The notes beneath the pieces were generated by a model. The model ran no database searches. It was not told the DNA's origin and saw only the letters and a list, made by a program, of their open reading frames with translations. The position numbers and the translations under genes are program-made. From Paragordius varius (Eukaryota > Animalia > Nematomorpha), in the NCBI GenBank assembly GCA_964247055.1, contig OZ176053.1, positions 4,650,001 to 4,714,000 of the forward strand: 64,000 nt of DNA. The letters are read 5' to 3'. Every line of letters begins with the position of its first letter. Position 1 is the stretch's first letter. This document shows positions 4,347 through 51,117 of this stretch, in pieces.

Positions 4347-4684
4347 ATGTCGATTGATAAAATTAATTTGTATGACGATATAAAATACATTGCAGAAGAC
4401 CGAAAAAATCAAGAAACTCAAACATGTAGTGAGGTATAAATAGGTTAATTTTAAGCTGGATAATGAAGAGATTTTACGGCTGAGAAAAAGCATTATCGTA
4501 TTATATACTATGGCTGATGACAGAATAAAAGAGATTGCTAAATCAAAAGATAAACTAATGGTTAAAAACACAAAACTTTTAAAAGAAAATAGGGAGTTAA
4601 AACTTGCCATGAAGTAAATGCATTAATTATTTTAGAAAACATGAAGAATCTATATCAAAAGTTATGAATAATTTATCCATATAA
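4347..4684 (+). CDS. Small (97 aa) predicted coiled-coil protein of unknown family, 3 exons
   Basis: Exons 4347-4433, 4456-4613, 4636-4684. Two 22-nt GT-AG introns each remove an in-frame stop. Product MSIDKINLYDDIKYIAEDRKNQETQTCSELDNEEILRLRKSIIVLY...LKLAMKKHEESISKVMNNLSI. No homologue recognised. Confidence 0.65.
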
Positions 4685-4719
4685 ATTAAAAATATAGCCA
4701 AAAAATTTATAAATAAATT

Positions 4720-6427
4720 TTATATTATATTTGGTGGTTCAATGATATTATGTATTTTACGAAATTCATTCAAAGGCATTCGCCAATATTTTTCATAATA
4801 TATTGACATAAGAAAATCGGCTTTGTATCCACAATCTATTGCCCATTGCTGATATTTCTCCAAGTACAATTGTTTTTGTCTAATTAAAAATCGTAAATAT
4901 AAAAAATATATTTAAAAAATAACATTTGTTTTTATTAAAATTTAATATTTATTTCTGTCGGTTAAAGTGACCAGATGACTAATCAATTACAGCATTATTT
5001 CCAGAAATAGGATTCTTTTATGGCTGCGTCGTTATGTATACTTGTTTAAAAAATGATATATGGATCACAACGATGGCAAATAAAATCTTTATGATTTAGT
5101 ATTAAAATAGTAAATCTAAATGGAGGTAGCCTATCTATAACATACCGTTATCGCATATAAGCCATTCCTAAGCTCAAAGCATAACATTATAATATTTCAT
5201 TAATTGGGTTCTCGTAACTGTGTTCAGTAATAATAAGCAGTATTTTTGATTGTAGTTTAATGTTGCCGTTATGTTAACATATGTAATTAACATTTTAGCT
5301 GAAACTTTTTAAAATGCATTATTGAGCGGTTAAACTACTTGCTGTCTTATTTTGATATAAAACCTAGCTAATACTATTTTTGTAGATATAACTTATCCCT
5401 TATACTTTGGTGTAAATCTGAATGGGCCAAATAAGGAGGCTAGAATGCACATGGGAAGGCCTGTTTGAATGGCTTCAACCCATTTGACACAAACTTCACC
5501 CAACATATTTGTGGGCATCCCCAACACCGTGTGTGATAAATCATGGATTTCTCGATACCGTTGCATGATGTAAGCTAATTCAGGATCATTAACAAAATGA
5601 ACAGGTTTTCTTGTGTCAGGACTAACATTCTATAGCCACATAAATTTGATAGAATATACATTTTATTTTTTATTATAGGGTAAGGGTTTAAATTATATAA
5701 ATAGACCCAATGGGGTTCAACATTCATCTTCCAGTGCTCACAATGGCGGATAATTGTTCAGACTAGGTTAAAAAACTATATTGTCAAATGTGATCCTATT
5801 CGACCATTACCATAATTAACGCGTAGTCAAAGTCCAAAGAATAATCTTTTATATTATTTAACACTAAATGGTGAATACCTCGCTATATTAAATACAAATA
5901 AATATATATAAAAACCCGTAGTCAGCTTCTTTATTTTTATAGAAACCAAAACGTTAAGTCCAATGCTTTGTTAATTTGAATAGCCTATATAGGGTTTAAC
6001 ATTATTTTTAATAAAAATATATGACAACCAAAATTATTTTAAATACATGTATTGATAATATATATTTACATTTACTATGTACCATCTAGCGTAATTATAT
6101 CCTAGGGTATCTGTAGGGAGTGAATAGAGTTCATTAAAATCAAAATACATGCTATTAATACGCGGTTTATCTCTTGTCACCTAATTAAATAAATATTACT
6201 GGAGGATTTGGGCACCTTCAATGCTGTTACGAAGTTTTTTTCTTATCTTAATTAAAGAGCGGTTTGCTAAAGTCTCGCCAAAAGTCGCAATCATATCTAC
6301 AACTTCAAATTGTTTTGTTACCATCTCTTTTTGGATCTATCATACAAAGTAAGCCCGAACCAATAGTTAAAACCGTTTTTTGAAGAAAATTCGTTGGTAT
6401 AAATGTAGTGTGTATTGGCGATCCCAT
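4720..6427 (-). CDS. COQ4: Ubiquinone biosynthesis protein COQ4, 5 exons, 229 aa
   Basis: Exons 6427-6322, 6296-6200, 6172-6070, 5629-5406, 4879-4720 (690 nt, open). Contains [59 protein letters not shown] with the HDxxH-x11-E metal motif, and C-terminal IYYEKYW. Missed by the ORF track. Confidence 0.92.
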
Positions 6428-6470
6428 TAGCCATCTGGTTTTACCGTACTAGCTTTTACACACATGTGTC
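6428..6470. promoter_or_regulatory. 43-bp interval between divergent COQ4 and BORCS8 start codons (putative bidirectional promoter or overlapping 5' UTRs)
   Basis: ATG on the minus strand at 6427 and ATG on the plus strand at 6471. Contains the palindrome ACACATGTGT. Confidence 0.55.
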
Positions 6471-6812
6471 ATGAGCAAATTGGAAACAGCAGCGAAAATT
6501 GGTATTTTATTTTTTATTTTAACTAGCTGTGGATAGATTTGTGGAAAATATTGAAATTGTTGCAAATGAACCTTCTCTAGCCCTTTTTAGGATATCTGAA
6601 CATGTTAGAAAATCATTGTTGGAACTCACCAAATCCAAAGTTTTATGTTTTTAATATATTAGTTATCAATTGAAAATACGCATGAAAAGCTGCTGGGAAG
6701 TATGTATGACATCGACTCTTCTATTAATGTATTATCAAAATATGAGAATAGTTTAAAGACTTGTAAAGATATTCATTCAGCGCTACATACTATCGTATCA
6801 AATATAAAATAG
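6471..6812 (+). CDS. BORCS8: BLOC-1-related complex subunit 8 (BORCS8/MEF2BNB), 3 exons, 97 aa
   Basis: Exons 6471-6501, 6527-6639, 6663-6812. Introns are 25 and 23 nt. AVDRFVENIEIVANEPSLALFRISEHVRKSL matches the family motif (human VTDKFTESVYVLANEPSVALYRLQEHVRRSL, from memory). Confidence 0.88.
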
Positions 6813-6841
6813 ATTTATTTATGATAAATGCGTGCAAAAAA

Positions 6842-22288
<15,447 letters not shown>

Positions 22289-22786
22289 TTACGAAATATA
22301 TGATTTAAAAATTGATCTCATTAAAAACTGCAAAATCAGGAGATATATGGATTAGAATATTGAAAGCCGTTTTATCTACATGCGCATTTTGAGTGTTATG
22401 TTTCACATGGCCGTGACCCTATTTTTCAACAAGATATTCCATACATTATCATAATAAGCCAGTCATTATTTTTTAAAAAATAATATAGCTAATATTATGG
22501 GCCTATTTCTCAACTCACGGGTCTCTAGCGGTTTAGAAAATGTTTTGTGCAAAGACAAATGCATCTTGATTGGCAAATTCTTTACAGAGGTCACGATTAC
22601 GACGCATATACAGCTCGCAAATATTTTATAAAGTCTTTTTTTACCGAATCAATAGCATAATTTAGGTCAAGATTTATGAATCCAATCTAAATGCAACCTT
22701 CTAGCTAACAACTTACAAATTAATATAATTCCGTAGAGAGCTTAATATTAAAAAAGGGATGGGCCATTTTCGCAGACCGTTTAAAT

Positions 22787-25700
22787 CAGTGGTACTCAAA
22801 CCGCGGCCCTAAGAGTGCTTAAAAATTGCCCTATGACCAAATTAATTTTATTTTTTATGGATGAATTTTTAAAATAGACATAAACGAATTTTCGACTATT
22901 TAAATTTTAATTTATTTTCTTAAGATATTATTTTGGTATATATACCCAATTTGAAATGGAGAAAATTTTCCTAATTAAAATGATTTCAAAATTTTGGCAC
23001 ACGTTGTTTCTGCTGTATTTTCTTTTCTATTTGGAATTATTGAATTTCTTTTTGGTATTTAAACAGCCTTTCACCCAAACTTGCATATACATATTCTTTT
23101 CAATGTTATCCTGCATCATTTATATAATTCATTCCCATAAAATATTTTCGAGTCAACTTCATTAAATTTCGACCTGTTTTTTTAATGCATAATTAAAATT
23201 ATATTCTAATTTTTTTAAAAAAAATACATAATATTTAAACATAAATTTAAAGAATGACATCTAATGCTAAAAACGTAAATTATTCGATGAAAATCGCACC
23301 CTTAAAAAAAGAATGGGAAGAACAATTCTTTGTCGTTTTAAATAAAAACAGACAATTTACAATACATCATTTTCATAAAATACCAGAAAATCATGAGAAA
23401 AGATATAGCTAACCACATCCGTGACAGAGTATTCAACCGCCGTAAATTCAAAAACCTTCAAAGATATCCCCAGTGATGATTCTTTTGTACACCGTTGTGA
23501 GATAACTAGCCTTAGCAAAAAATAAATAGATTTTTTGTTTTAAGACATGAAATTCTTTTATTTATAAAAGATAACAGAATGACGGGAAATTAATAGTGAC
23601 AAATGGTGGGTTTTATTAGCCTATCTTTGCGACATTACTTATAAATTTAGTATTTTTAAACAAGTCTTCAAGGGAGCAAAATAATAACCAAATTTGCTAA
23701 TAAAATATCTGCTTTTGAAGAAAAATTAATAATATATAAACAAAATTATATAAATAACTCCTATATTTTCCAACAATTATATCGATTCATAAAGAAAATA
23801 TGGAATTTACCGCGAAGATTAATTTAATAATAGACAATCATCTAACATTTAAATGAGATGAAATTCAGATTTAAAGAATTAAGAAATATTAAAATCGCTT
23901 TAAAACTCGTTGAAAATCCATGGCATATGTGTTAATTGGTTATAACCTTAAGTTATATTATTATTATTTATTATATAATTTATATGACATTGTATGTACA
24001 AGTATTCTAATTATAGTTGCCAACTTTATAACCTTAAGTTAAATTATACGACATTGTAGTTAATAAATGTACTTAATTTGAGTTATTAATTCATATGTCG
24101 TCTCTATTCTAAGCGCATTATTGGTGCCGTTAATGGACGAAATTTCCAAAATCAGTATTAACGAATACGATCCAAACACTAATTTTAAACAATACTTAAA
24201 GCACGTGAATCGTATCTTAATCGCTAAAAACATTAATCCAAATGATGAAATATTTAAACTTATTCCTGGCCTATGCAGGACTACGCACAATCTCTAAACT
24301 GGAAAACCAAGCGTTTCCTACGAAAATAGAGGAGATGACATGGGCTCAAATTCAAAAATTGGCAATGCAAATCTTTGCCCCGGACAAAAGCATATGGCTG
24401 AGTCGTAAAGAATTCTTTAAAACAACCAGACAAGAAGGCGAACCAATCATGAGTTATATGGAAAGATTAAAAGTACTAGCTGACGATTGTGATTTTGAAG
24501 GCAATATCTCATACTTATTAAGAGATGTTTTCTTGATAGGACTAAATATGCCAATCCTAGAACGGGAATTACATATAAGATTCCCCACGGGTCAAAATGA
24601 AGGCGAACCAGTGTCACTACAAATGGTAATTGATATGGCGCATTCCCTCGAAGTGATTGAACCGAAGGTGCTGAAAATCCGCCAAGAAAGAACCATACAC
24701 CAAAGAGACTGCCAAAGATGTGGGAAATGTCATGCAATCGATAAATGCAGTGCAAAGGGTCAACGATGCTATAAGTGCGGAAAATACAACCATTTTGCAA
24801 AGTATTGCCGAACCAAATATCCCACCAAACCAGGTATTCGGGCAGTGACAAATTCAACGGGGATGGGCCCAACGATAACAGTGCAACTTAACGGAATAGA
24901 AACATCAATGTTGTTTGACACCGGTGCTGATGTGACAGTTATCAATGAGAGATGCTGGAAATCAACAGGAAAACCACGACTGGAGGTAGGACAAAGACTA
25001 TCCACATACAATAATGAAACTATCCCGACCATGGGTAAAACAGAATTGCGCGTAACAATGAACGGTACGACAAAAACCCTTGAATGTTTAGTAACCGAGG
25101 GAGATCGGCCATTAATTTTTGGTCTCCCTTGGATCCGTGCATTTGCTTTAAATTTACCAGATAATGTGATGATCAATAATATAACTAATAAATCTATATA
25201 TAACCAGTATAATAGGTTGTTCTCGGACGGGTTAGGCTGTCTTAAGGATATGGAGGTATCGATTGTGATAAAAAATAATGCAACACCCAAAATATACCCC
25301 TGCAGGAGAGTTCCCCTACCCCTCCAAGAACGTGTGGAAAAGGAACTAGATAGATTGATAAACCTAGGTGTCTTGAGAAAAATTGGCCCAAATAGGGAGC
25401 GAATATCGTGGGCCACACCAACAGTAAATATATTAAAACTAAATGGCCAAATAAGGATATGTGCGGATTTTCGAATCAGCCTCAATCCTCATTTTCTACC
25501 CGATTCCCACGTAATCCCCACCTTTGTTGAACTAATCTCAAGAACAGCTCAAGGGACAGTTTTTACGTCACTAGACCTGAAGGATGCTTACCTGCAAATT
25601 CCCATAAAACAATCATCACAACCACTACTGACCATAACTACCCATCAAGGTTTTTATTGTTACCAACGACTTCCATTTGGGTTGACTACGGCCCCTCATA

Positions 25701-28700
25701 TATTTCAACGAATCATGGATAATTTGATTGGTGATATACCAGGTATATGTATCTATTTAGATGACATATTAATATCAGGTAAAACAAGAACCGAACATGA
25801 CGCCACATTGACCAGGGTATTGCAACGATTGGAAGCTGCAGGGTTGAAACTGAGCAGAGACAAATTGCAACTTGCCGTTTCATCTGTCAATTACATGGGA
25901 TATGAAATTTCAAAGAATGGAATTCGTCCCACCAATGACAAAATTCAAGCTTTGATCAATTGTCCGAGACCCACCAATAAGACAGAACTAAGATCATTTT
26001 TAGGACTGCTAAACTTTCATGAACGATTCACAAATCTCCATCAAGCGATATGCAACCTCCACAGAAACACAGGTTCAATTAGACCATGGGCCTGGACCGA
26101 GATAGAAGAAGAGGAGTTCCAATCCGCAAAACAACTAATGATAAATTACAATACATTAATACCGTATAACCCAAATTGGCCAATACTAATAGAAACAGAC
26201 GCATCAAACAAGGGATTTGGAGCGATCTTACTACATATTACCCCGGAAGGAAAGCGTTCCATATCATACGCTTCACGCAAATGCACCGATGCCGAAACCA
26301 ATTATTCAACAATAGAGAAAGAAGCAAAAGCTATCACGTATGCTATAGAAAAATTTAAACCATTTATATATGGTAGAAAATTCAAAATTATAACCGACCA
26401 CAAACCACTAATCGGGTTATTTGGTCGAACTCGAAATTTACAAAATATTAATAATGCTAAACTTCTTAGATGGATCTATAAAACATCGGGATACGACTAT
26501 GAAATCGAATATAAAAAAGGGCAAAACAACTTAGCCGACGCTCTATCCAGATTACCAAATAATGATAATACCATGGAGGTGCAAAATGAAGATGATGAGG
26601 TATCACACACGGTAAAATTTTTAACTATGAATAAATTTAATTTAAGTAAAGAGTTAGTGGAGGAGGAGATAAGGTTAGATCCATTGGCAAACAAACTTAA
26701 ATCAGCAATAAGAACAAATGATTGGAGTGATCCAAGTATAAAGGAATTTCTGAAATAAAAAATGAGATTCAAATATACTATAATCTTTTATTTGTAAATG
26801 ACAGATTACTAATACCCACATCCTTGCAGCGGGAGGTAATGAAATTCCTACATACTGGACATAACGGAGCGCAATCGATGAAACAACAAGCAAGACAATC
26901 CATATATTGGCCAAACTTAGAAAAAGATTTAGAAAATTTTGTAGAAACATGTGAACAGTGTCAAAGAAACAAGCCTAATATAAAGGAAAATCCAACGTGG
27001 AAATGAAATTTCAACACCGCGTTGTGGGAGAGAATTCACATCGACATAGCCGGCCCCATAGATGGTTATTTTTGGTTAGTTACCATTGATAGCGCTTCAA
27101 GATGGGTTGAGGTGGATCTACTCAAATCGATAACCTCACAACAATTATTGAATTGTTTAGAAAAACACATGGCCAGATTTGGTTTTCCGAGACAGATAGT
27201 CACTGATAATGGGCCATACTTTACATCCCATGAATTCAGAAGTACCTTACATAATCTTAATATAAAACATATTTTAGTGAGTCCATACCATCCCAAGTCC
27301 AATGGATTGGTTGAAAGATGTATTGCAACCCTCAAATTCAGATATAGAGCTACGAAAACGCAAACAATGCATGCCCACGAGGCAATCAACACGATTTTAT
27401 ATGGCTATCGAAATTCAACACACAGTGCCATTATGAATACACCATCACAAGTCTTTCTGAAGAGACACCCAAATGGTCCGATGTCATGGCTCAAAACACA
27501 AACAACTGAGTTTATCGATAATGAAATAGAACCGACTCGCCAGTTCGTTCCAAGAGAGAAGGTTTTTATAAAAAATGAAATAGAAAAAGGATGGAGGGCA
27601 GGGGAAATATTAGAACGCAGGGGTCCATTGTCATATATGGTAACAGACGAAACAGACAGAGTTCTTAGAAAACACACTGATCAATTAAAACAAAGCATGG
27701 AATGTCCGAGAACAAGCACGCCAGCGCCCGAAACACCAATTAATTCCGAAGAAAATACCTCTACTCCACCAGATCTCGAAGCCGTAAACAATAATATACA
27801 ACCATCGCCGATAGGCATAACCACACAGGATAATAACGTAGCTCCAACAACGAATATAGACATGCCTAAACCCAGGTACCCACAACGCCAGCGAAAACCC
27901 CCAGACCGCTTTACTATAGGGGGAAGATAATGTTAATTGGTTATAACCTTAAGTTATATTATTATTTATTATATAATTTATATGACATTGTATGTACAAG
28001 TATTCTAATTATAGTTGCCAACTTTATAACCTTAAGTTAAATTATACGACTTTGTAGTTAATAAATGTACTTAATTTTAGTTATTAATTCATATGTCGTC
28101 TCTATTCTAAACGCATTAATATGGATATCCAATATTAAGCAAATTGAGCATTTCGGTTTTGATCTGGCGCATATCATTAAAGAATTCATAGATTTAATAA
28201 ATTATTCTAATTTGGAAGCTATAATCAAGAGAATCGTAGAGAAGAAAGATATGTAGAGTTTTGGCAAGATGTGCCAAATAAATATGAAAATATAAAAAAA
28301 TATGATCAAGTCATCTTAATTTTTTTCCCTCTATTTACACGTGTGAGACGGCATATTCAAAAAAGAAGCATGTCAAGAATACATACAGAAATCGTTAAAC
28401 CAATGATCATATGGACGACCTATTAAGATTGGCTTGTTATGAGGCGGAAGCATATTTGTCAAAAATTATTGGTTAATATCATATTAAATGTTGTTATCAA
28501 AATATTTTAATTTTTTAAATTAAATGGTTCAAAACGAGTTTTTAGCTGAATTTACAAGCCATCCGCAAAAAATTCATTGTATTGATTTAGCATAAATATG
28601 TCCATATGTGTCAAATAGCTATGGAATATTTGCCATTATTAGGTTCATGGCCCTCGAAAAAAAAATATATTTTATTTGGCCCGTCAAATTTTTTTGGTGA

Positions 28701-28709
28701 GTACCACTG
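22787..28709 (+). mobile_element. Decayed hAT transposon (GTF2IRD2/SPIN-like transposase remnants) split by a Gypsy insertion
   Basis: TIR CAGTGGTACTCA at both ends. Remnants KKEWEEQFFV (about 23300), KWWVLLAYLCDIT (about 23600) and C-terminal PSIYTCETAYSK..KNTYRNR..DHMDDLLRLA (about 28330-28435). TSD not preserved. Confidence 0.8.
23930..28118 (+). mobile_element. Ty3/Gypsy LTR retrotransposon (Mag-like), full length but inactivated
   Basis: LTRs 23930-24120 and 27931-28118 differ by 3 substitutions and one TTA unit. 5-bp TSD ATATG, PBS TGGTGCCGT, PPT AGGGGGAAGA. Gag CCHC knuckle, protease LFDTGAD, RT YLDD, RNase H ETDAS, integrase HHCC and DDE, GPY/F module. Frameshifts near 24245 and 26755 and a nonsense codon at 27004-27006. 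Confidence 0.96.
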
Positions 28710-29195
28710 ACCCAGATGATCTTAAAGCATGATTTATGGAAAAACGACCAGAATGGACCAGATTTTCAAAAACATTGGAGAATGGCTTGACAGATGTTTT
28801 CCGCAAAAGACAATTTTTTGGCACAGAAAATCTATTAGAGCATCTGTATACCAATGTACAATTTCAAAAATAATATTAATTTCCTATTAAAATTCATAAA
28901 ATAAAAACTTATGACTGCACCTGAATAAAATTATCATAATAAACCGAAAATTGCGTTCTTTTATGTTTGAGACTTTTATTTTTCAATCATAAATATTGCT
29001 CATTTGTATGTATACCCATTATAAAACCATGCGACGATATATGCACCTTAATAATTATCTCAAGATATCGCATATCATTGATTAATTTTAAAATAACATC
29101 ACATAGAGAACAATACGCATACATAATCATTTATTAATTTTATACATGGATTCATTATAAATATTGATATATGACGATATTTTTTAGCAATTAAA

Positions 29196-30670
29196 TTAAT
29201 CTTCAAGTCGGCGGCCTTGACCCCAGGCGTGTCTCCTATGAGCAGATTCGTTATTTGTATCACTTGATTGTGTTGCTGTCCGATAACTGGGTGGCACACC
29301 AAAACCACTAACTCCCCCAACTCGGTTTGGGATATATTTATACCTATATTTAAAGATAAAAAATAAAACAATTTACAGTAAATATGATAAAGAAAGTGGT
29401 ATCTGTAATAATTTGTTTTTTTTCTAAAAGGGATGAACTGAATAAATTGACCTATATTAGTATATAATAGTACCGACAATTTAAATAATATAAATTTAAA
29501 CCAAACAAACGCCATAATTAATGACGCACTTCAATGAATCTTAATATATTTATACAAAATAAAAATAATAGAGATTTAAAGGGGTCGGTTATGCAACAAA
29601 ATATTAGAAAATAAATTGATGAACGTACACGACAATATATATTAAATTAACTTAGTTTCTAATGCATAGAAATCTTTAAAAATGATATGGATAGGTCTTG
29701 GCATTTTATGTATTTAACTTATAGTCGTATTTGTTATACAAGACCATTTATAAATACCAACCAAGATTCAATAAACCCAATAGTTGAGATGAGTAATTTG
29801 ACACATTTTGACATAATTGTATAAATTCATTTATAAAAACAGGTATATCACTTAATTTTTCGGCTGTTTTAATTCTCTTATTTTTAAAAATGAAGATCGC
29901 ATTTATATAAGGATATAAAAAATGTTACAATATATTCGGTGTATCCAAAAATGAACGACCCCCCATTTCTTGAGGATACTTGAATTTGAGAAAAAAGTAT
30001 AAATGCCCCACTAAGATTCCAAGTATTTCACTCATTGCCCTAAAAACTATGAGACTATTTACCCTCCTTGTAATATCATATTGAATCCAGCCAAGACCCA
30101 TGGTAAATATATAGCCTATAATAAAATAAAATTGGTAAAACTTTAAATTGAGTTCCAAACCAAAAAGATACAATCACATCCTTATTTAATTGACACCAAA
30201 CATATAAAATGCTTAAAACCATTGGATCTAATAATAACTAGTATATAACGTAAAAATTATACATATATATCAAAAAACAATCCAATTATCACTAGCATTA
30301 TCCAATTAAATAGGAGTAAGAAAACATAATCCGCAGGTCGGCGTTCATAAGTCCCTGAATATTTCAATTAATATACCTTTTTCTAACTGAGATGAATAAT
30401 TGTAAAGAAAATATATTAATAACAGATAGTGGAATCCAGTAGCAGGTGATAGTGGATAATATAATAATGCAGTTATTGGTCTCCAAATCTATTTATAATT
30501 ATTTTAAAAACTTGAAAATGTTTTATGGTAGGTTCATATAATAATATCATAGCGTATGGTTTTAGTATACCTATTCGTCCTGCCAATGGAAATATTATTG
30601 AGAGAGAAAACCATATTCGTGTAATAATGGGGATTGTTTTAAACCAATCCATCAATTCATTTTGGGCCAT
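29196..30670 (-). CDS. DERL1: Derlin-1 (ERAD rhomboid pseudoprotease), 7 exons, 256 aa
   Basis: Exons 30670-30512, 30488-30377, 30354-30263, 30237-30142, 30115-30063, 30039-29929, 29343-29196 (771 nt). Introns are 23, 22, 25, 26, 23 and 585 nt. Motifs FQIWRPITA, RPADYVFLLLFNW, FWFGTQFKAIYLPW, C-terminal HAWGQGRRL (SHP-box-like). Confidence 0.95.
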
Positions 30671-31028
30671 CCCGTTCGCTTTTCTTTTGAAACGTGGTTG
30701 AAAGATATTATGAAAAATCCGCTGTTATGGATAATATAAAATTATTTATAACTTTCTAAAGTTTTTAGATCTTAACGGTATATAAAATATTTTTATTAAT
30801 CTATTTAAAACAAATTTTGTAATTCGGATATTTAATTTGATGAATTCGCAAAATATCATAATACATCAACCTAAATAACAAAACATTTTCACACTTGATG
30901 GGATACAATATTGACACCGCTATAATTTGGTATACAACAGACTTTAATTTAAACTTAGGATGCTTTATATATTCAAAAATCTTAGTCTGTTTAGCCAAAA
31001 GTCATATTTTAATAATAACTTTATTTTA

Positions 31029-31500
31029 CTCGATTTAAATTAGGGTATCTAAAGCCTCCAGACCATCTTTAAATTATTTTTATTAAATAACCGAAAATGG
31101 TCCTAATTTAAATGCACACTTTTATCTCAATATAAATTATATTGATAAACCAAAACATCTAAATAAAAATTTCTATTCCCTATTTCACGCCATTTCTATT
31201 TCACAACAATTCGCAACATATCGTGTTTTTTTAACGCCAAAGTAAACTTAATATATATAAAAATCACATTTAACATTTATATAAGAAAAATATTTATTTT
31301 TATTCATTTAACTATTACAAATATTTCAGGTTGGCTAGATAGCCTTACATCAAATAAGTAATATTGAGCTATCTTTTAAAAACATTTATATTTTAGTGAT
31401 CAATGTTTTATATTTAGAAATTGATTTTAACAGGCCTGGGGTCCCCAAAGACCACATGATGAACGAGGACGGAAATGATTGTGTTGTATCCAAGTCTTAA
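31029..31500 (-). mobile_element. Degenerate piggyBac-type MITE (family A)
   Basis: Recognisable termini tcgatttaaattagggtatctaaa and aacaggcctgggg...gtgttgtatccaagtcttaa. Confidence 0.6.
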
Positions 31501-31569
31501 CATTCCATTACCTAATAGGTTCTATTTTCCTGAGCATTTGGATTTCGAATATGTCAAAAGTATTTAAAG

Positions 31570-32530
31570 CAGGGGTTGGCAACCTTTTTAAAGGTGAGCC
31601 GTTTTCTAAATAGAAAACTTTAGGCTAGCTGTGATTATTATTAAGGAAATTTGATTCCTTTATATTAAACCTAAAAATATGAGATATCATCTTCTTTACT
31701 CTAATAGTTAAATTATTTTAATGATTAAATTTAATCTGGTTGTGATTTCGATACTGATACTCTCAACAAGTTTTGCAATTTTCATCCGGCACTGTTTTTA
31801 TATTTTGATTCATACCTTAAAAACTTTGTTCGTATAAACAGGTGCTTGAAAAATTCTACATAGATTTGGCAAAATATTTTATGATACTAAATTTTTTATC
31901 TGGTAGACTTTATTAAAATGCAACTAAATTCATCAAAATCATGTTAATTATTTTTAGACTGCGAAGAATTAACCCTGATTGTAAATTTTCTGGTGCTTTT
32001 ACAATATTAGAGTATTTTTTAAAATTTAGTATATTTCTTTATTGTACAAAAAAACATGAAACCGATGACAAAAATTTTCATCCAACACATTTAGTGTTTC
32101 AATAAATTTATGCGAGCCTTATGTTTATCGGTTTTAATTAAAAACGATTGCAAAGTAGAAAAATAAAAATAAACAATTTTATTTTTATTTGGAAACTTTC
32201 TATTTCTCTAAAAAATAGTTAAATTACTTTTTCCTTGCAATGTTTTCTTTTATTCATTTGAATAAGCTGTGATATCAACCAGAAAGCTAAATCTCGTAGC
32301 CAAGGAAAATTGGATTATTCTGGGATATAATTATTTCAGCCAAAAAGATTTGTATTTACTCTATTAACTCAAAGAATCAAAAGTTTCACGCGACTAAGCC
32401 ATTTTACTTCTGTAAATTGTATAACATTGTCATATTATAATTGATCATCCAATAAATTTCTAACCAATTAATGGTTGAAGTTGTCATTGTTTACCAGCCG
32501 CAAAACGCTTACGGTTAAACATTATCTATT
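31570..32530 (-). mobile_element. Decayed hAT transposon fragment
   Basis: Terminus CAGGGGTTGGCAAC at 31570. Minus-strand remnants FTEVKWLSR and WLRDLAFL near 32270-32420. No matching second TIR found. Confidence 0.6.
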
Positions 32531-32540
32531 TTTTTATGTT

Positions 32541-33100
32541 TTAACACTTGGATACATCACATTCATTTTAGTCCTTCGATAATTGGGGTAGTTAAATACC
32601 CCAGGCCTGTTTAAAATTAAATCCTTTACAAAATATGGAGGAATCAAAACCATGGCAAAATTTTGCACTTATATAGCATAATAAACCGAGATATATAAAA
32701 AATTTTATTCAAAAATACTTGATATAGTTTTTTTAAGCCAAAACCGAAAGGTAAAAATTTAGTCCATGTGACATGTTTGCCATGTTAAAATTGAAAAATA
32801 ATACAAAAAAACCGCTTTTTCTATTTCTATCAATGTTAAATGTAATTTAAATAAAAAATTAGCTTAAATTTTCCCCTTAAAATTAAAATAAGACGATATT
32901 TTGCAAAATAAAAATGGCGTCGAAGTAGTTTGACATGAAACTTTTTTTTCAAAACAAATTTTATTTAGATATTTTGGCATATTTATATAATTTTTATTAG
33001 GATGGAATCATAAATTTAAATTGGGACCGTTTCAGTATTTTTTTAAAAATACTAACCAAATTTAGTCTGGGGTATTTAGATACCCCAATTTGAATCAAAG
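32541..33100 (+). mobile_element. piggyBac-type MITE (family A)
   Basis: Starts TTAACACTTGGATAC and is collinear with 39294-39882. Right terminus slightly degenerate. Confidence 0.8.
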
Positions 33101-33958
33101 TAATAAATGCTATGGCGAGCCATATAAAATCACACGATATAAGATATTATCTTAACTTTAAAAATATGCTTTCTTTAGTGTAGGCTAATTATGCAAAAAA
33201 TTTTCCTTTCCAACTTTTTTGCCGCCATTTTTTTCCATATATTTTTTTCGCTAATGCTACAGGCAAGTAATTATTGTTTGAAATTTTAAATAATTATCAG
33301 CTTTCAAGTTCATTTTACCAGCAAATTATTGATTTATTGTTATTTTAGTATCACCTGTTCAATCGAATCATATTTCAGAGCAGTCCCGATAAACTCTAGA
33401 AGTCACAAAAATGTAAAAGGTTTAGCTATTTTGTCTATGAGGAGAATGTTTGATAATTTAGCTGTAGTTTATTTGCGAAATTGTGCTATACAAAACCCTA
33501 AAAGGTAAATAGGACAAAAAAGGGAAAAGATAATGAATATATAAAAGGCATATTTTATTAACATTAGAAAGTCTATCTTTATTGTGCTAGAAACCATGCT
33601 TATTTTCGGTGATTTTTATGGGATGTGTAATTTTCCTCCGAAGATATATCATGCCGCTATATAGTCGTCAAATAAAAATCTTGCTGTAATAGATATTATG
33701 ATCAGGCGCTTTATCTAATAAAAAGCTTAATTGGACCCCTTACATCGCATACACTATATTTAAGTTTATTAGAAAAGTTAGCGGCATATCAAAAAAAAGA
33801 AGCTGGTTTAAACCCACTTTGATATCACAATATAAAATTAGCGGCATGTAGATTGATAATAGCGAAAAAAACTTAAATTACTGTAATTTTTTGATGATTC
33901 ATTTCAAAACATATGTAACCTTTTGCAGCACAAAACTTGGCGGAATATTTTTTGCGCG

Positions 33959-35081
33959 ATGGTTTTAAACGCTAACTGCAAACAACCAAGATATTTCCAA
34001 AACGTATGTTAAAATATTATTTTAGATTTGTATTGAAGGCAATATAGGAAGTGGAAAAACATCTTTTACCAAATGCTTTTTAAACATACCCAATTTCCAA
34101 GTACCGTTTTTAATTATTTTAGGTATGCCCTGAACCCATAGAAAAATGGCGTAACCTCAATGGCTACAATTTGCTGGTTTGTACCTTTATTTATTTCAGG
34201 ATTTATATTACGAAAATCCACAAAAATGGAGTTTTCCGTTTCAAATGTTGGTCCAAAAATCTCTCATGGATATTTTATATAAACCAACTGTATAATTCAT
34301 TTTATAATATTTAATATTTAGGATTGCTTTTACAAAATTATAGAAAGATCTATATATTCAGCCAAATATACCTTTGTAGAAAACATTCGTAAAAAGTTTT
34401 CTTATATTAATGCTATAGTAATAAAATATCAGATGTCGAATATTTGGTTTACACAGAATGGTTTGATTTTTGTTCAAAAGTATTACCATGCCCAATTGAC
34501 CTAGTGGTTTATATAAAAACGGACCCTGAAGTTTGTTATGAACGTATTCAAAATCGCGGTAGACCAGAAGAAGCTCTGGTACCTTTGGTATAATCAACAC
34601 ATTTTTTAAAATAATTATTTGTGAATACTCAATTTTTTTCACTTTTATAGGAATATTTACAAGAATTACATGATCTCCATGAAAATTGGCTTGTTAAAAA
34701 ACAATATAAAGATTTCAAGATCCCAGTTGTGGTGAGAATTTTTTATATGTATTAACTATCTATTTGTTTGCATAGTAAGGCATATTTTATGTTTGGCTTT
34801 AATTTTATTATATGTTATATACAGTATTTTTTTGAATATTAATAGTAATAGTATGTCCCTAAAATTAATTTTTGTCCGGAAAATTATATTTAATATTTTT
34901 TTTATATTTAATTCTTTTACAGACGATTGATGGAAACAAATCTTACGACCAAATAAAACTTGAAGCTCAAAACTTTTACCACACTTTGCTCGACCTAAAT
35001 TTAAATTTACAGAGTAATCAGAATTTATTCAACGATTCCATCAATGCGTCGCGACCCCCTTTACAATCTTTGAACCAATAA
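33959..35081 (+). CDS. Deoxynucleoside kinase (dNK / thymidine kinase 2 family), 8 exons, 248 aa
   Basis: Exons 33959-34003, 34026-34100, 34123-34176, 34200-34289, 34322-34395, 34419-34587, 34651-34731, 34923-35081 (747 nt). Introns are 22, 22, 23, 32, 23, 63 and 191 nt. P-loop IEGNIGSGKT, EPIEKWRN, ERSIYSA, lid RIQNRGRPEE. Confidence 0.93.
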
Positions 35082-48705: not shown

Positions 48706-51117
48706 TAAGGTGACCAGATTTTTTGAAGGAAAAAGCGGGACAAATCAGAGAAAGGGGGGGCATGGAGGGGGTACGGCCAAAAATTTTTATACAAAAAATT
48801 TATTGTAATATTTATTTATTTTTAACACAAAAACATTATAAATATAAAAAATTTTATATTGGTTGGTTGAGTGAATGCGTTTTAGCAGATTGTCATAATT
48901 TTTTAAAATATTGTAGAAATCTTCACAAGAATTTGTCAAATTATGTATGACAGATAAAATGGCCTTTAAAGTTTTAACATTCAAATTTAATTTTTCCGAT
49001 GTCCCGACCTGATTTACTGTGGAAAAAACGCGCTCATTAGCAGCGTTGGTTCCAAGTAAAGATAGTGCAAATTCACAATTTTTAAAATATTATTTTATGG
49101 AACATAGTTTGTTTCAAAATGATGAAACATTTCTAACCATTTCTTTTCTACTGTATTTTTTTCTGTTTATAATTTAAGTTTTTCATTATTAATATATTTT
49201 ATAACTAATGATAATTCTGAAAAAAAGATTATTTTCTAAAAGGTTACTTTTTGGGAATTTTCGGGAGATGCAGATGTAACCAAATGATTTTTGAACATCG
49301 CACCAATTAAATTCTGGTTTTAATGATATCCAATAAAACAATTTCATTGAATAGCACCGTCCAGTCTTCCAAATGATCTACAGCTTGTATAAAACATTTT
49401 TATATGGTACAGGATACTTGGGGATAAATTAAGCCTTGTTTTTCTAACTTATTTATAATATTGCGGATGGTTACTGATAAAAATTATTTTCTAACCTTTC
49501 TTGACATTGGAATTTCCGGTTACTAACTTCATTGGCTACTTCGATTCCCGAATTTTTGTCACCTTCTATCAATTTAATAACATGTTGAAAGAGAGAAGCA
49601 TGATTATGTAGGAACTCTAACCATATTTTTGAAGAATCACTTTTAAAAAACTTTTCCAAAGTTTGTTCTGTGAAAAAAAAACGATTTTAAAGGATATTTT
49701 TAAAATTGTTTCTAGAGCTGGCAGAAGAGCTAACCAACGAGTTTTACAATATCCAAGCATTTTTTGATATTGAACTTCTGCATTTTCACAGAATTCTTTA
49801 AGCGTTTCAACTCGTGTGTATATAAAATTAGAAATATATATTAACAACTACATTTTTCACATCTAGGGATAACAAATCAGCAGCTGTTTGAATAGCGTTT
49901 GCGCTGCACACCCAACGTCAATAATGTTTTGATTAAGATTATCTGCTAATTTATGAAAATTATTTTTTGTTCCCCTCCTTGCTTTTCTACCGAAGTTGTA
50001 TTGGTGTTGTCAGCGCAATATGCGATGATTTTGTCATTATTTTTTTCAAGAATATTCATTATTGAAGTAAAAATTATGCTGGAATTTACACCGGGTAGAG
50101 AAATAAAATAAATTTTAATTAAACTCCGGTTTCTGGACCAATATATCGTATTAAAGTGGGAAATAATTTTGTTTCCTGATTTGATACATCAGTCAGCAAA
50201 TCTTTTTGTGTTTCAGAAAATGCATGTGACGAAAGGACATTGCATACAATGGCTTCAGCCTTTGAACGGGCACGAATAACCTGTGAGGTACATTCCATAG
50301 ATCTAAAGGAATGTTTGTAATTAACGGCGTGAAAAGACAAAACGCATTCGGCTAGTCCCAAATTTTTTTCTTCTTTTTCCAAAAGCGGTTTAAAATCGCC
50401 CATTTTGTAGATGATGCCGTCACATCTAAACATCGTTTATGTTTCTGTGTTTTCATATGCTTTGTAATATCATGCTTGCAGCCATGTGCTAGGGTGAATT
50501 CCCCCTCGCATAAAGAACATTTAACAAATGATTCGTTTTTCGTTTTTTTAATAAAAGGAAAATCTTTCATTAATTCATCGTTGAATTTACAACCTCTTTT
50601 TGTACTCATATTTTTAAACTAATATAGGATAAAAAATATAATATTGCCTTAATTTTCTGGAGTAAACGTATAAGCTACCGATTTGTTGTATTAATTTGTT
50701 TTTTTAATAATGTTGGCAGGTAATATAACTAAAATATTAGTATAAAAAAATATTTTATTACCTTAATTTTCTGGAGTAAACGTATAAGCTACCAATTTGT
50801 GGTATTTATTTGTATTTTGATAATGTTGGCAGTAGGATTAGAAAGCAAAATGTATAATCATATGATATATGTTCGAAAAAATAAATATTTTAATTTAAAA
50901 ATAAAAAATCTCAATTTAAAATTAATATAGATTTTAAAGCTAACTAATGATAAAAAATTTAAACGGATAAATAAATTTTTTATAATAAATTTAAATGTAT
51001 TAAAAAAAAATTTTATAATCGTGAAAAAGCGGGACATTTCAAAAACGCAGCGGGACGCGGGACAAAGTGTGAGAAAGCGGGACTGTCCCGCCAAAAGCGG
51101 GACGTCTGGTCACCTTA
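48706..51117 (-). mobile_element. hAT DNA transposon, internally deleted and frameshifted
   Basis: TIR TAAGGTGACCAGA at both ends. Perfect 8-bp TSD GTTATAGT. Subterminal GCGGGAC repeats. Transposase pieces on the minus strand: zinc finger CSLC..H...H (50609-50352), FHAVNYKHSFRSMEC, CKTRWLALLPA. Confidence 0.92.

Follow-up and report, generated by a model that had tools for sequence, protein, structure and literature searches.

The minimum length of an animal intron has long been set at approx. 30–40 nt. A stretch of 64,000 nucleotides from Paragordius varius (contig OZ176053.1, positions 4,650,001 to 4,714,000; hereafter the window) raises the question of whether an animal of the phylum Nematomorpha removes introns considerably shorter than this, and if so, where such introns came from and what kind of spliceosome handles them. 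The original prediction had pointed to 15 segments of 22–27 nt and one of 32 nt that interrupt the reading frames of five genes; here we evaluate these segments from their sequence, from homology, and from RNA and DNA read contigs.

Sequence features of the short segments and the genes that carry them

Read in the direction of its gene, each of the 16 segments starts with GT and ends with AG, as had been claimed, and their lengths are 22 nt (five segments), 23 nt (five), 25 nt (three), 26, 27 and 32 nt. Beyond these dinucleotides the splice motifs are reduced, i.e., GTa at the 5' end and little past AG at the 3' end, without a polypyrimidine tract, and the interior is merely AT-rich. Position +3 is A in 11 segments and T in five (GT[A/T] in 16/16 versus 0.68 in the chance GT..AG background), and position −3 has T 12 times, with C and A twice each (YAG in 14/16 versus 0.48); at position +5, G appears in just two of the 16, that is, without preference. 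The G+C content of the introns is 0.18, compared with 0.34 in chance GT..AG segments and 32% in the exons. The motif T[TC]AA[TC] is present in nine of the 16, with its A located 4–13 nt (mostly 7–13) before the 3' end; its enrichment is marginal when composition is controlled (P = 0.06 in a shuffling test and 0.007 in a comparison with low-GC decoys), which leaves TTAAT a marginal candidate for the branch site. Retention of any of the 16 segments leads to a premature stop, a property expected from the earlier claim that almost all of them shift the frame or contain stops. This same property also biased which introns could be noticed in the first place. Only one of the 16 lengths is a multiple of three, a deficit that is uninterpretable because only frame-breaking introns were noticeable.

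A restored reading frame is by itself weak evidence, since GT..AG pairs spaced 22–27 nt are common by chance (approx. 10 per kb per strand in the DNA of the window) and spurious chains are easily built. A script that chained spliced ORFs under lax rules produced many spurious ORFs of more than 100 aa in the window, and its output was discarded as evidence because of this abundance. The case rests on homology, conserved intron positions and the spacing of RNA contigs. From the continuity of Pfam profile positions across the junctions in Derlin-1, the deoxynucleoside kinase (dNK), COQ4 and BORCS8, 12 segments are predicted as introns with strong support. The claim that the segments restore the frames of five genes stands for these four, and is putative for the fifth, gene A, for which no homologue was found. 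Within the window, 15 of approx. 35 homology-supported introns measure 22–27 nt, and the others range from 32 nt to kilobases.

The Derlin-1 gene (29196..30670, minus strand) encodes 256 aa in a clean ORF distributed in seven exons (30512–30670, 30377–30488, 30263–30354, 30142–30237, 30063–30115, 29929–30039 and 29196–29343). These are separated by five micro-introns at 30489–30511 (23 nt), 30355–30376 (22 nt), 30238–30262 (25 nt), 30116–30141 (26 nt) and 30040–30062 (23 nt), and by a long intron of 585 nt (29344–29928), beyond which lies the seventh exon that was missed in the original prediction. Successive exons match positions 1–41, 42–75, 77–106, 107–138 and 158–187 of the DER1 profile, the 17-aa exon before the last match being too short to scan; all five micro-introns are covered in this way. 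Between residues 4 and 202 of the spliced window protein, the alignment with fish derlin-1 is gap-free and the identity 59% (57% for the full-length protein, with gaps at the ends only).

The dNK gene (33959..35081, plus strand) is of the insect dNK type, and its eight exons encode 248 aa in a clean ORF; among solved structures, those of insect deoxynucleoside kinases come closest to it. Its short introns are located at 34004–34025 (22 nt), 34101–34122 (22 nt), 34177–34199 (23 nt), 34290–34321 (32 nt) and 34396–34418 (23 nt). The gene continues past the extent first assigned to it, with introns of 63 nt (34588–34650) and 191 nt (34732–34922). Its profile runs over the exons as 1–24, an 18-aa exon, 44–68, 78–96 and 99–152, and covers the last four of the short introns. 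COQ4 (4720..6427, minus strand) has five exons, a clean ORF of 229 aa, and GT-AG ends at all four introns, two of them short (6297–6321, 25 nt; 6173–6199, 27 nt) and two long (5630–6069, 440 nt; 4880–5405, 526 nt); the supposed separate gene B turned out to be the 5' portion of COQ4. The Coq4 profile matches 3–29, 32–62, 64–93, 98–173 and 164–221 on the successive exons. The last exon, which is variable, shows 59% identity with P0051, a fragment from Gordionus, versus 33–38% with 14 other COQ4 proteins; exon 4 is too conserved to separate taxa. BORCS8 (6471..6812, plus strand; three exons, 97 aa) contains introns at 6502–6526 (25 nt) and 6640–6662 (23 nt), the second of which is covered by the profile (13–46 on exon 2 and 51–93 on exon 3). 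For the first, the basis is a 10-aa first exon bearing the ATG together with the restored frame. This intron and the dNK intron at 34004–34025 are moderately supported, each joining a short ATG-bearing first exon that lies outside the profiles.

Gene A (4347..4684, plus strand) is a putative coiled-coil ORF of 97 aa with two candidate micro-introns of 22 nt each (4434–4455 and 4614–4635), which are regarded as putative. The reading in which gene A is no gene, and the two candidates are GT..AG pairs that occur by chance in non-coding sequence, is rather doubtful but one to be taken seriously, given that no Pfam family or homologue was found, that the protein atlas returned generic coiled-coil look-alikes only, and that spurious spliced ORFs of approx. 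100 aa are plentiful in the window under lax chaining. Nevertheless, both candidates are exactly 22 nt long and AT-rich, with a GTA start and TTAAT placed as in the verified introns; the ORF has an ATG start and a coherent coiled-coil composition, and the gene lies tail to tail with COQ4, as expected of a compact gene pair.

Evidence from RNA and from a second DNA sample

In the indexed public RNA runs, the window's own sequence was almost entirely absent (0.00 of the sampled words). Read contigs were compared over 29800–34900, i.e., the Derlin-1 and dNK region, and Derlin mRNA contigs that are 80–90% alike to the window were present in three RNA runs that carry the same species label (X6, X7 and X8; depth 300–560). 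All five micro-introns are missing from these Derlin contigs, and the spacing equals that of the exon-only sequence to the base. At the joint 30038>30141, found in the three runs, 102 letters are skipped and 53 lie between, so that the 53-nt exon is kept and 23 + 26 nt are gone. At the joint 30198>30609, found in X6 and X8, 410 letters are skipped with 340 between, which corresponds to the loss of 25 + 22 + 23 nt; the X7 contig stops at 30198. In X6, the 584 letters of the record equal the exon-only length counted from the ATG. Judging from their divergence, these contigs appear to stem from a relative or a paralogue and not from the window's own strain. At a likeness of 80–90%, they reveal the mature mRNA of a relative, rather than the excision of the window's segments themselves; the window's own transcripts would be spliced at the same sites.

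DNA contigs from a sample with a second organism label (organism B) extend across seven of the introns; two of the three contigs are gap-free, and the other has a single gap. Between this DNA and the window, five of the six listed differences in the dNK exons are synonymous third positions in the spliced frame.

Origin and splicing of the short introns

The conservation of intron positions was compared in Derlin-1. The introns of the window gene are located at (residue, phase) 53,0; 90,1; 121,0; 153,0; 170,2 and 207,2, and those of fish derlin-1 at 51,0; 88,1; 119,0; 151,0; 168,2 and 205,2. With an offset of two residues, the position and phase of all six introns are the same, including that of the 585-nt intron, and four exons (112, 96, 53 and 111 nt) have exactly the same length in the fish gene. 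At the matching sites, in the same order, the fish introns measure 2690, 846, 657, 85, 79 and 207 nt. Tick introns, with lengths of 3.6–7.6 kb, match four, and probably all five, of the Derlin-1 micro-introns. These correspondences suggest that the Derlin-1 micro-introns are ancient introns that shrank.

The segments have the sequence anatomy of introns, their genes are colinear with orthologues, positions and phases are conserved, and the segments are present under two DNA labels and absent from closely related mRNA. It is very likely that they are genuine U2-type GT-AG introns, reduced to 22–27 nt from ordinary introns of the bilaterian ancestor. In this proposal, the ancestral introns would have lost most of their length by deletion, to a floor of approx. 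22 nt, and other introns of the same genes would have been kept long or lengthened by transposon insertion. Recognition would occur across the intron (intron definition), through a minimal 5' GT[A/T], a 3' [T/C]AG and a very low G+C content, with the branch adenosine probably located 7–13 nt from the 3' end. The cutting would be carried out by the ordinary spliceosome, as has been proposed for myxobolids, Dicyema and ciliates.

The presence of micro-introns alongside kilobase introns in DNA rich in transposable elements (TEs), another point of the original prediction, was borne out: introns of 440–585 nt are found in the same genes and kilobase introns in the neighbouring gene for alanyl-tRNA synthetase (AlaRS; 6845..22288, minus strand), which spans approx. 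15.4 kb. The junction of the first AlaRS intron was read (22013–22069, 57 nt), the later ones range from hundreds of nucleotides to kilobases, and one of the AlaRS introns contains a LINE reverse-transcriptase ORF (approx. 17702–19557). The tRNA-synt_2c profile matches successive AlaRS ORF pieces at 1–40, 41–100, 143–208, 208–259, 298–348, 383–423 and 481–515. The matches of a gypsy pol ORF come from insects, nematodes, rotifers and flatworms at 28–48% identity (best approx. 36%) and do not point to any one taxon. At 48.8–50.6 kb, hAT-like ORF pieces offered no profile continuity usable for seeking micro-introns in a transposon, and neither Rfam models (snRNAs included) nor a tRNA scan gave hits in the window. 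The genome report of Gordionus gives 26.9% G+C and 63.8% repeats, values that resemble those of the window's genome.

A different view, which goes back to the original prediction, is that lariats of approx. 22 nt require a remodelled spliceosome, with changes in U1/U2/U6, SF1, U2AF, Prp8 and other components. In yeast and human the distance between the 5' splice site and the branch point is normally more than 40 nt; here it would be at most approx. 15 nt, and the 5' signal is without the usual G at +5. Still, this requirement seems unlikely. The long introns of Derlin-1, COQ4 and dNK also have GT-AG ends, and the introns of 440–585 nt and of kilobase length carry GTA..YAG ends like those of the short ones; since the same transcripts contain both size classes with the same ends, one machinery must serve both. 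Moreover, myxozoans with introns of 22–27 nt retain the canonical branch-binding region of U2 as well as U2AF1/2, and the same is true for Stentor, so that no special machine need be assumed (PMC13644364). As for the idea that the segments are insertions that shift the frame of pseudogenes, or errors introduced by assembly or polishing, it is highly improbable: short AT-rich segments are of the type that long-read errors could yield, and GT..AG pairs at this spacing are frequent by chance, but in at least 12 cases the GT..AG boundaries match precisely the points where homology is interrupted, the Derlin-1 positions and phases coincide with those of fish and tick, the segments recur in differently labelled DNA with synonymous dNK substitutions in the spliced frame, and abundant mRNA of a relative has the exon-only length to the base.

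Significance and comparison with known short-intron systems

With the segments taken as shrunken ancestral introns removed by an ordinary spliceosome, the novelty lies in the lineage and in the type of genome, given that introns shorter than 30 nt were already known in animals. Nematomorpha would probably be the third independent animal lineage with such introns, and the first with a repeat-rich genome of 200–300 Mb, in which introns of 22 nt and of kilobases would be excised from a single pre-mRNA by one and the same spliceosome. If this is correct, extreme intron shrinkage is possible without genome compaction, and there is a natural system in which the way the spliceosome measures the distance from the 5' splice site to the branch point is directly testable with 22-nt and kilobase introns of one transcript. 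To our knowledge, standard gene finders and BUSCO-type searches model neither such introns nor the exons of 17–37 aa between them. The COQ4 model of Gordionus is a 91-aa fragment that begins inside exon 4, downstream of the sites of the window's micro-introns, and this truncation fits the blindness of gene finders to micro-introns, although it should be taken as a lead. If the introns are real, hairworm gene sets, claims of gene loss and phylogenomic matrices would have to be re-annotated with introns allowed down to approx. 18 nt. Our literature search retrieved no paper on hairworm introns.

The list of known cases in the original prediction is out of date: besides Dicyema, it should now include the myxobolid Myxozoa, since a report of September 2026 described introns of less than 30 nt in these two parasitic animal lineages and predicted more (PMC13644364). 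The median intron is 27 bp in Henneguya salminicola and 22 bp in Thelohanellus kitauei and Myxobolus rasmusseni (PMC13644364). Features common to the myxobolids and the window are animal GT-AG introns of 20–27 nt, which lie at conserved sites with conserved exons on either side, a 5' signal cut to GTa with little beyond AG at the 3' end, the clustering of short introns within genes, an AT-rich genome (29% G+C; 27–29% for the shared AT-richness) and a parasitic life. On the other hand, theirs are fast-evolving cnidarian genomes, described as compact and with relatively few TEs, whereas the window shows moderately conserved genes of bilaterian type (probably ecdysozoan), abundant TEs, long introns within the same genes and kilobase ones in their neighbours, and a frequent TAG (12/16). 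A Derlin-1 that is 57–59% identical to vertebrate derlin-1 is unlike the fast-evolving proteins of myxozoans and dicyemids, and an AlaRS gene that extends over 15 kb, with introns full of TEs, is not expected of a compact genome. The view that the window's genome is that of a myxobolid or a dicyemid, and its introns therefore no novelty, is very unlikely; the COQ4 exon and the genome style shared with Gordionus, which suggest a relative of that hairworm, and a kinase closest to insect dNK also count against it.

For Dicyema japonicum, introns of approx. 26 bp are attributed to Lu et al. 2019 and Zverkov et al. 2019, as cited in PMC13644364. Dicyema is likewise a bilaterian with introns shorter than 30 nt, a conserved exon-intron structure and reduced splice signals; nevertheless, the dicyemid body consists of approx. 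30 cells and the genome is small and reduced, with short introns as the norm, in contrast with the two size classes found inside single genes of the window (22–27 nt versus 440–585 nt and up). Among protists, tiny introns are known from Paramecium (20–35 nt), Stentor (15–16 nt) and the Bigelowiella nucleomorph (18–21 nt). These systems resemble the window in the length class, in the premature stop that results from retention and in a spliceosome presumed to be canonical. They differ in their nearly unimodal distribution of tiny introns and their gene-dense genomes, while the window combines the standard genetic code and animal genes with ancient metazoan intron positions.

Gene models and profile continuity

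Originally, 16 tiny introns (15 of 22-27 nt and one of 32 nt) were predicted in five genes: five in Derlin-1 (29196-30670, minus strand), four plus the 32-nt one in a deoxynucleoside kinase gene (dNK, 33959-35081, plus strand), two in COQ4 (4720-6427, minus strand), two in BORCS8 (6471-6812, plus strand), and two (4434-4455 and 4614-4635) in gene A, a putative small coiled-coil ORF (4347-4684, plus strand). Read on the strand of its own gene, each of the 16 segments has GT..AG ends, and any of them causes a premature stop if retained, as predicted. These ends alone mean little, because in the window DNA GT..AG pairs at 22-27 nt spacing occur by chance at about 10 per kb per strand, and the chaining of spliced ORFs by a permissive script, rejected as evidence, produced dozens of spurious "spliced ORFs". 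The premature stops also say little, since only frame-breaking introns could have been noticed in the first place.

Homology is the decisive evidence for these introns. Exons were scanned one by one against Pfam, and the profile coordinates of neighbouring exons were compared. For the DER1, dNK, Coq4 and BORCS8 profiles, the coordinates run on from exon to exon without loss or overlap: 1-41, 42-75, 77-106, 107-138, a 17-residue exon below the scannable size, and 158-187 for DER1; 1-24, an 18-residue exon, 44-68, 78-96 and 99-152 for dNK; 3-29, 32-62, 64-93, 98-173 and 164-221 for Coq4; 13-46 and 51-93 for BORCS8. The models of three of the genes have clean ORFs with GT-AG at each intron, i.e., Derlin-1 (7 exons, 256 residues; introns of 23, 22, 25, 26, 23 and 585 nt from 5' to 3'), COQ4 (5 exons, 229 residues; 25, 27, 440 and 526 nt), and dNK (8 exons, 248 residues; 22, 22, 23, 32, 23, 63 and 191 nt). 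The segment previously considered a separate gene (gene B) is actually the 5' part of COQ4. Given the contiguous profile coordinates across the junctions and the clean spliced models, 12 of the 16 introns are strongly supported as genuine. The first introns of dNK (34004-34025) and BORCS8 (6502-6526) are moderately supported, since the short first exons fall outside the profiles. Both 22-nt putative introns of gene A are unverified; searches with this ORF found neither a Pfam family nor a homologue, and its only matches were generic coiled-coil proteins.

At its variable last exon, COQ4 shares 59% identity with P0051, a COQ4 fragment from the hairworm Gordionus, against 33-38% for 14 further COQ4 proteins from animals. 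The Gordionus genome is reported to have 26.9% G+C and 63.8% repeats, values that match this DNA. Among solved structures, insect dNKs are nearest to the kinase, and Derlin-1 is conserved far better than expected for myxozoans or dicyemids. A nematomorph origin of this DNA is likely. The annotated P0051 has 91 residues and begins within exon 4, at an internal Met; compared with window positions 4720-5629, it is devoid of the N-terminal part, the region where the COQ4 of the window has its two micro-introns. Published hairworm annotation may break at such introns.

Derlin-1 intron positions, RNA and a second DNA sample

With Derlin exon 1 as query, a search of protein representatives retrieved full-length derlins. 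The best matches to the complete spliced protein are the derlin-1 of fish (Carassius) and frog, with 59% and 57% identity, respectively, along residues 4-202 of the window protein and zero gaps. The exons of the fish gene were mapped exactly, and its introns, given as (codon, phase), are located at (51,0), (88,1), (110,0), (119,0), (151,0), (168,2) and (205,2); those of the window gene are at (53,0), (90,1), (121,0), (153,0), (170,2) and (207,2). After a two-residue N-terminal offset, every window intron coincides in position and phase with a fish intron, leaving one of the seven fish introns unmatched, and exons of 112, 96, 53 and 111 nt are common to both genes. At the six matching sites the fish introns measure 2690, 846, 657, 85, 79 and 207 nt. 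In a derlin-1-like gene of a tick, at least four of the five Derlin micro-intron positions, and probably the fifth, are shared, with introns of 3.6-7.6 kb at the matching positions. Because the fish and tick positions and phases coincide, the Derlin-1 micro-introns are very probably orthologues of ordinary bilaterian introns reduced in length, and are neither insertions nor chance segments.

The window's own 31-mers, as sampled, are virtually absent from the indexed RNA runs. Three RNA runs under the same species label (X6, X7 and X8) were aligned to the window at 80% likeness, and each gave a single abundant Derlin contig (depth 300-560, pieces 80-90% alike). All three have a joint 30038>30141 at which 53 record letters stand against 102 in the window, i.e., the 53-nt exon 30063-30115 is retained and the 23-nt and 26-nt introns are missing. 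In X6 and X8, the joint 30198>30609 skips 410 letters with 340 between, which equals 410 - (25+22+23); the X7 contig stops at 30198. The X6 record counts 584 letters between the start codon (30670) and 29968, which is the length of the exons alone to the base. These contigs probably represent mature Derlin mRNA of a diverged relative, of a sibling species filed under the wrong name, or of a paralogue; they are not the window's transcript, so that they bear witness to colinearity and not to the act of cutting. In the aligned Derlin CDS pieces (29968-30670) the three runs differ from the window by 12-20%, with zero window 31-mers; for these reasons, a single species name seems to cover RNA and genome of different species or of lineages separated by a deep split.

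Micro-introns exist in independent genomic DNA, since contigs of a differently labelled DNA run (X5) span them, covering 30225-30482, 33998-34350 and 34347-34665 with 0, 1 and 0 gaps, respectively. Among six listed dNK exon differences between the window and X5, read in the spliced frame, five change a third codon position and leave the residue unaltered, and the sixth is a Leu>Met replacement.

Long introns and genomic surroundings

The predicted coexistence of tiny and long introns was borne out: introns reach 585 nt in Derlin-1, 526 nt in COQ4 and kilobases in the alanyl-tRNA synthetase gene (AlaRS, 6845-22288, minus strand). Derlin-1, COQ4 and dNK all have their micro-introns on the 5' side and their long introns on the 3' side, an order opposite to the usual rule of a long first intron. 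The first intron of AlaRS has 57 nt and later ones reach kilobases, one of them with a LINE-type reverse-transcriptase ORF (17702-19557, minus strand), and the peptidase-C78 gene (approx. 41.4-44.3 kb, plus strand) has introns of approx. 0.4 and 1.4 kb.

These ordinary animal genes, together with the first exon of BCL7 (from 53686, plus strand), lie on both strands of DNA with 24-39% G+C per 2-kb step, mostly around 27%. Although TEs abound around them, genes lie close together: gene A and COQ4 are tail to tail with ends 35 nt apart (4684-4720), and COQ4 and BORCS8 are head to head with start codons 43 nt apart (6427-6471), which suggests a shared bidirectional promoter. A gypsy-type retrotransposon (24221-27927, plus strand) shows long open gag-pol frames in pieces of 845 and 307 residues and a G+C content of 37-39%, above the host DNA; its best matches are elements of insects and nematodes, at an identity of only about 36%. 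Remnants of a hAT-like transposase (48790-50618, minus strand), with weak Dimer_Tnp_hAT and zinc-finger matches, are scattered among ORF pieces in different frames; the breaks may reflect either decay or micro-introns of the host type. Between Derlin-1 and dNK, a very high-copy repeat (32536-33219) has a summed contig word depth of 6,700-25,000 in X5 versus 3-18 in most of its flanks, as well as numerous internal joints and variants in the X5 contigs; the repeat probably represents a TE in dispersed copies or a satellite-like element.

Splice signals and comparison with known cases

The 16 introns have lengths of 22 (five), 23 (five), 25 (three), 26, 27 and 32 nt. Their G+C content of 18% is below that of the flanking exons (32%) and of GT..AG segments arising by chance (34%). 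At +3 there is A in 11 and T in five, never G or C; G is not preferred at +5, and position -3 is T in 12, C in two and A in two. A T[TC]AA[TC] motif is present in nine of the 16 and would place its candidate branch A, in most of them, 7-13 nt upstream of the 3' end. With composition taken into account, the motif exceeds expectation only marginally (shuffling, P 0.06; low-GC decoys, P 0.007), and as a putative branch-site motif it is a lead only.

PMC13644364 (Mol Biol Evol, September 2026) describes introns shorter than 30 nt in myxobolid Myxozoa; in 51 animal genomes, Dicyema japonicum is the only other case. These cases combine reduced splice signals with canonical U2 snRNA and U2AF. Further lineages were predicted in that study, with no mention of Nematomorpha. 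The word "intron" is absent from the Gordionus genome paper and from a comparative hairworm preprint, and intron length is not treated in the top-ranked literature pairing hairworm genera with intron-length terms. Therefore the kind is already known in animals and the lineage appears to be new. The introns described here are real micro-introns of ancient origin, and what is added is the match of Derlin-1 positions and phases to fish and tick, a Derlin RNA spacing exact to the base, and the comparison with a second DNA sample. By analogy with the published cases, the remodelled spliceosome originally proposed would not be needed. The splice signals are reduced to the same degree as described for myxobolids and Dicyema; in contrast with those cases, here the genome is large and TE-rich, and long introns are present in the same genes.
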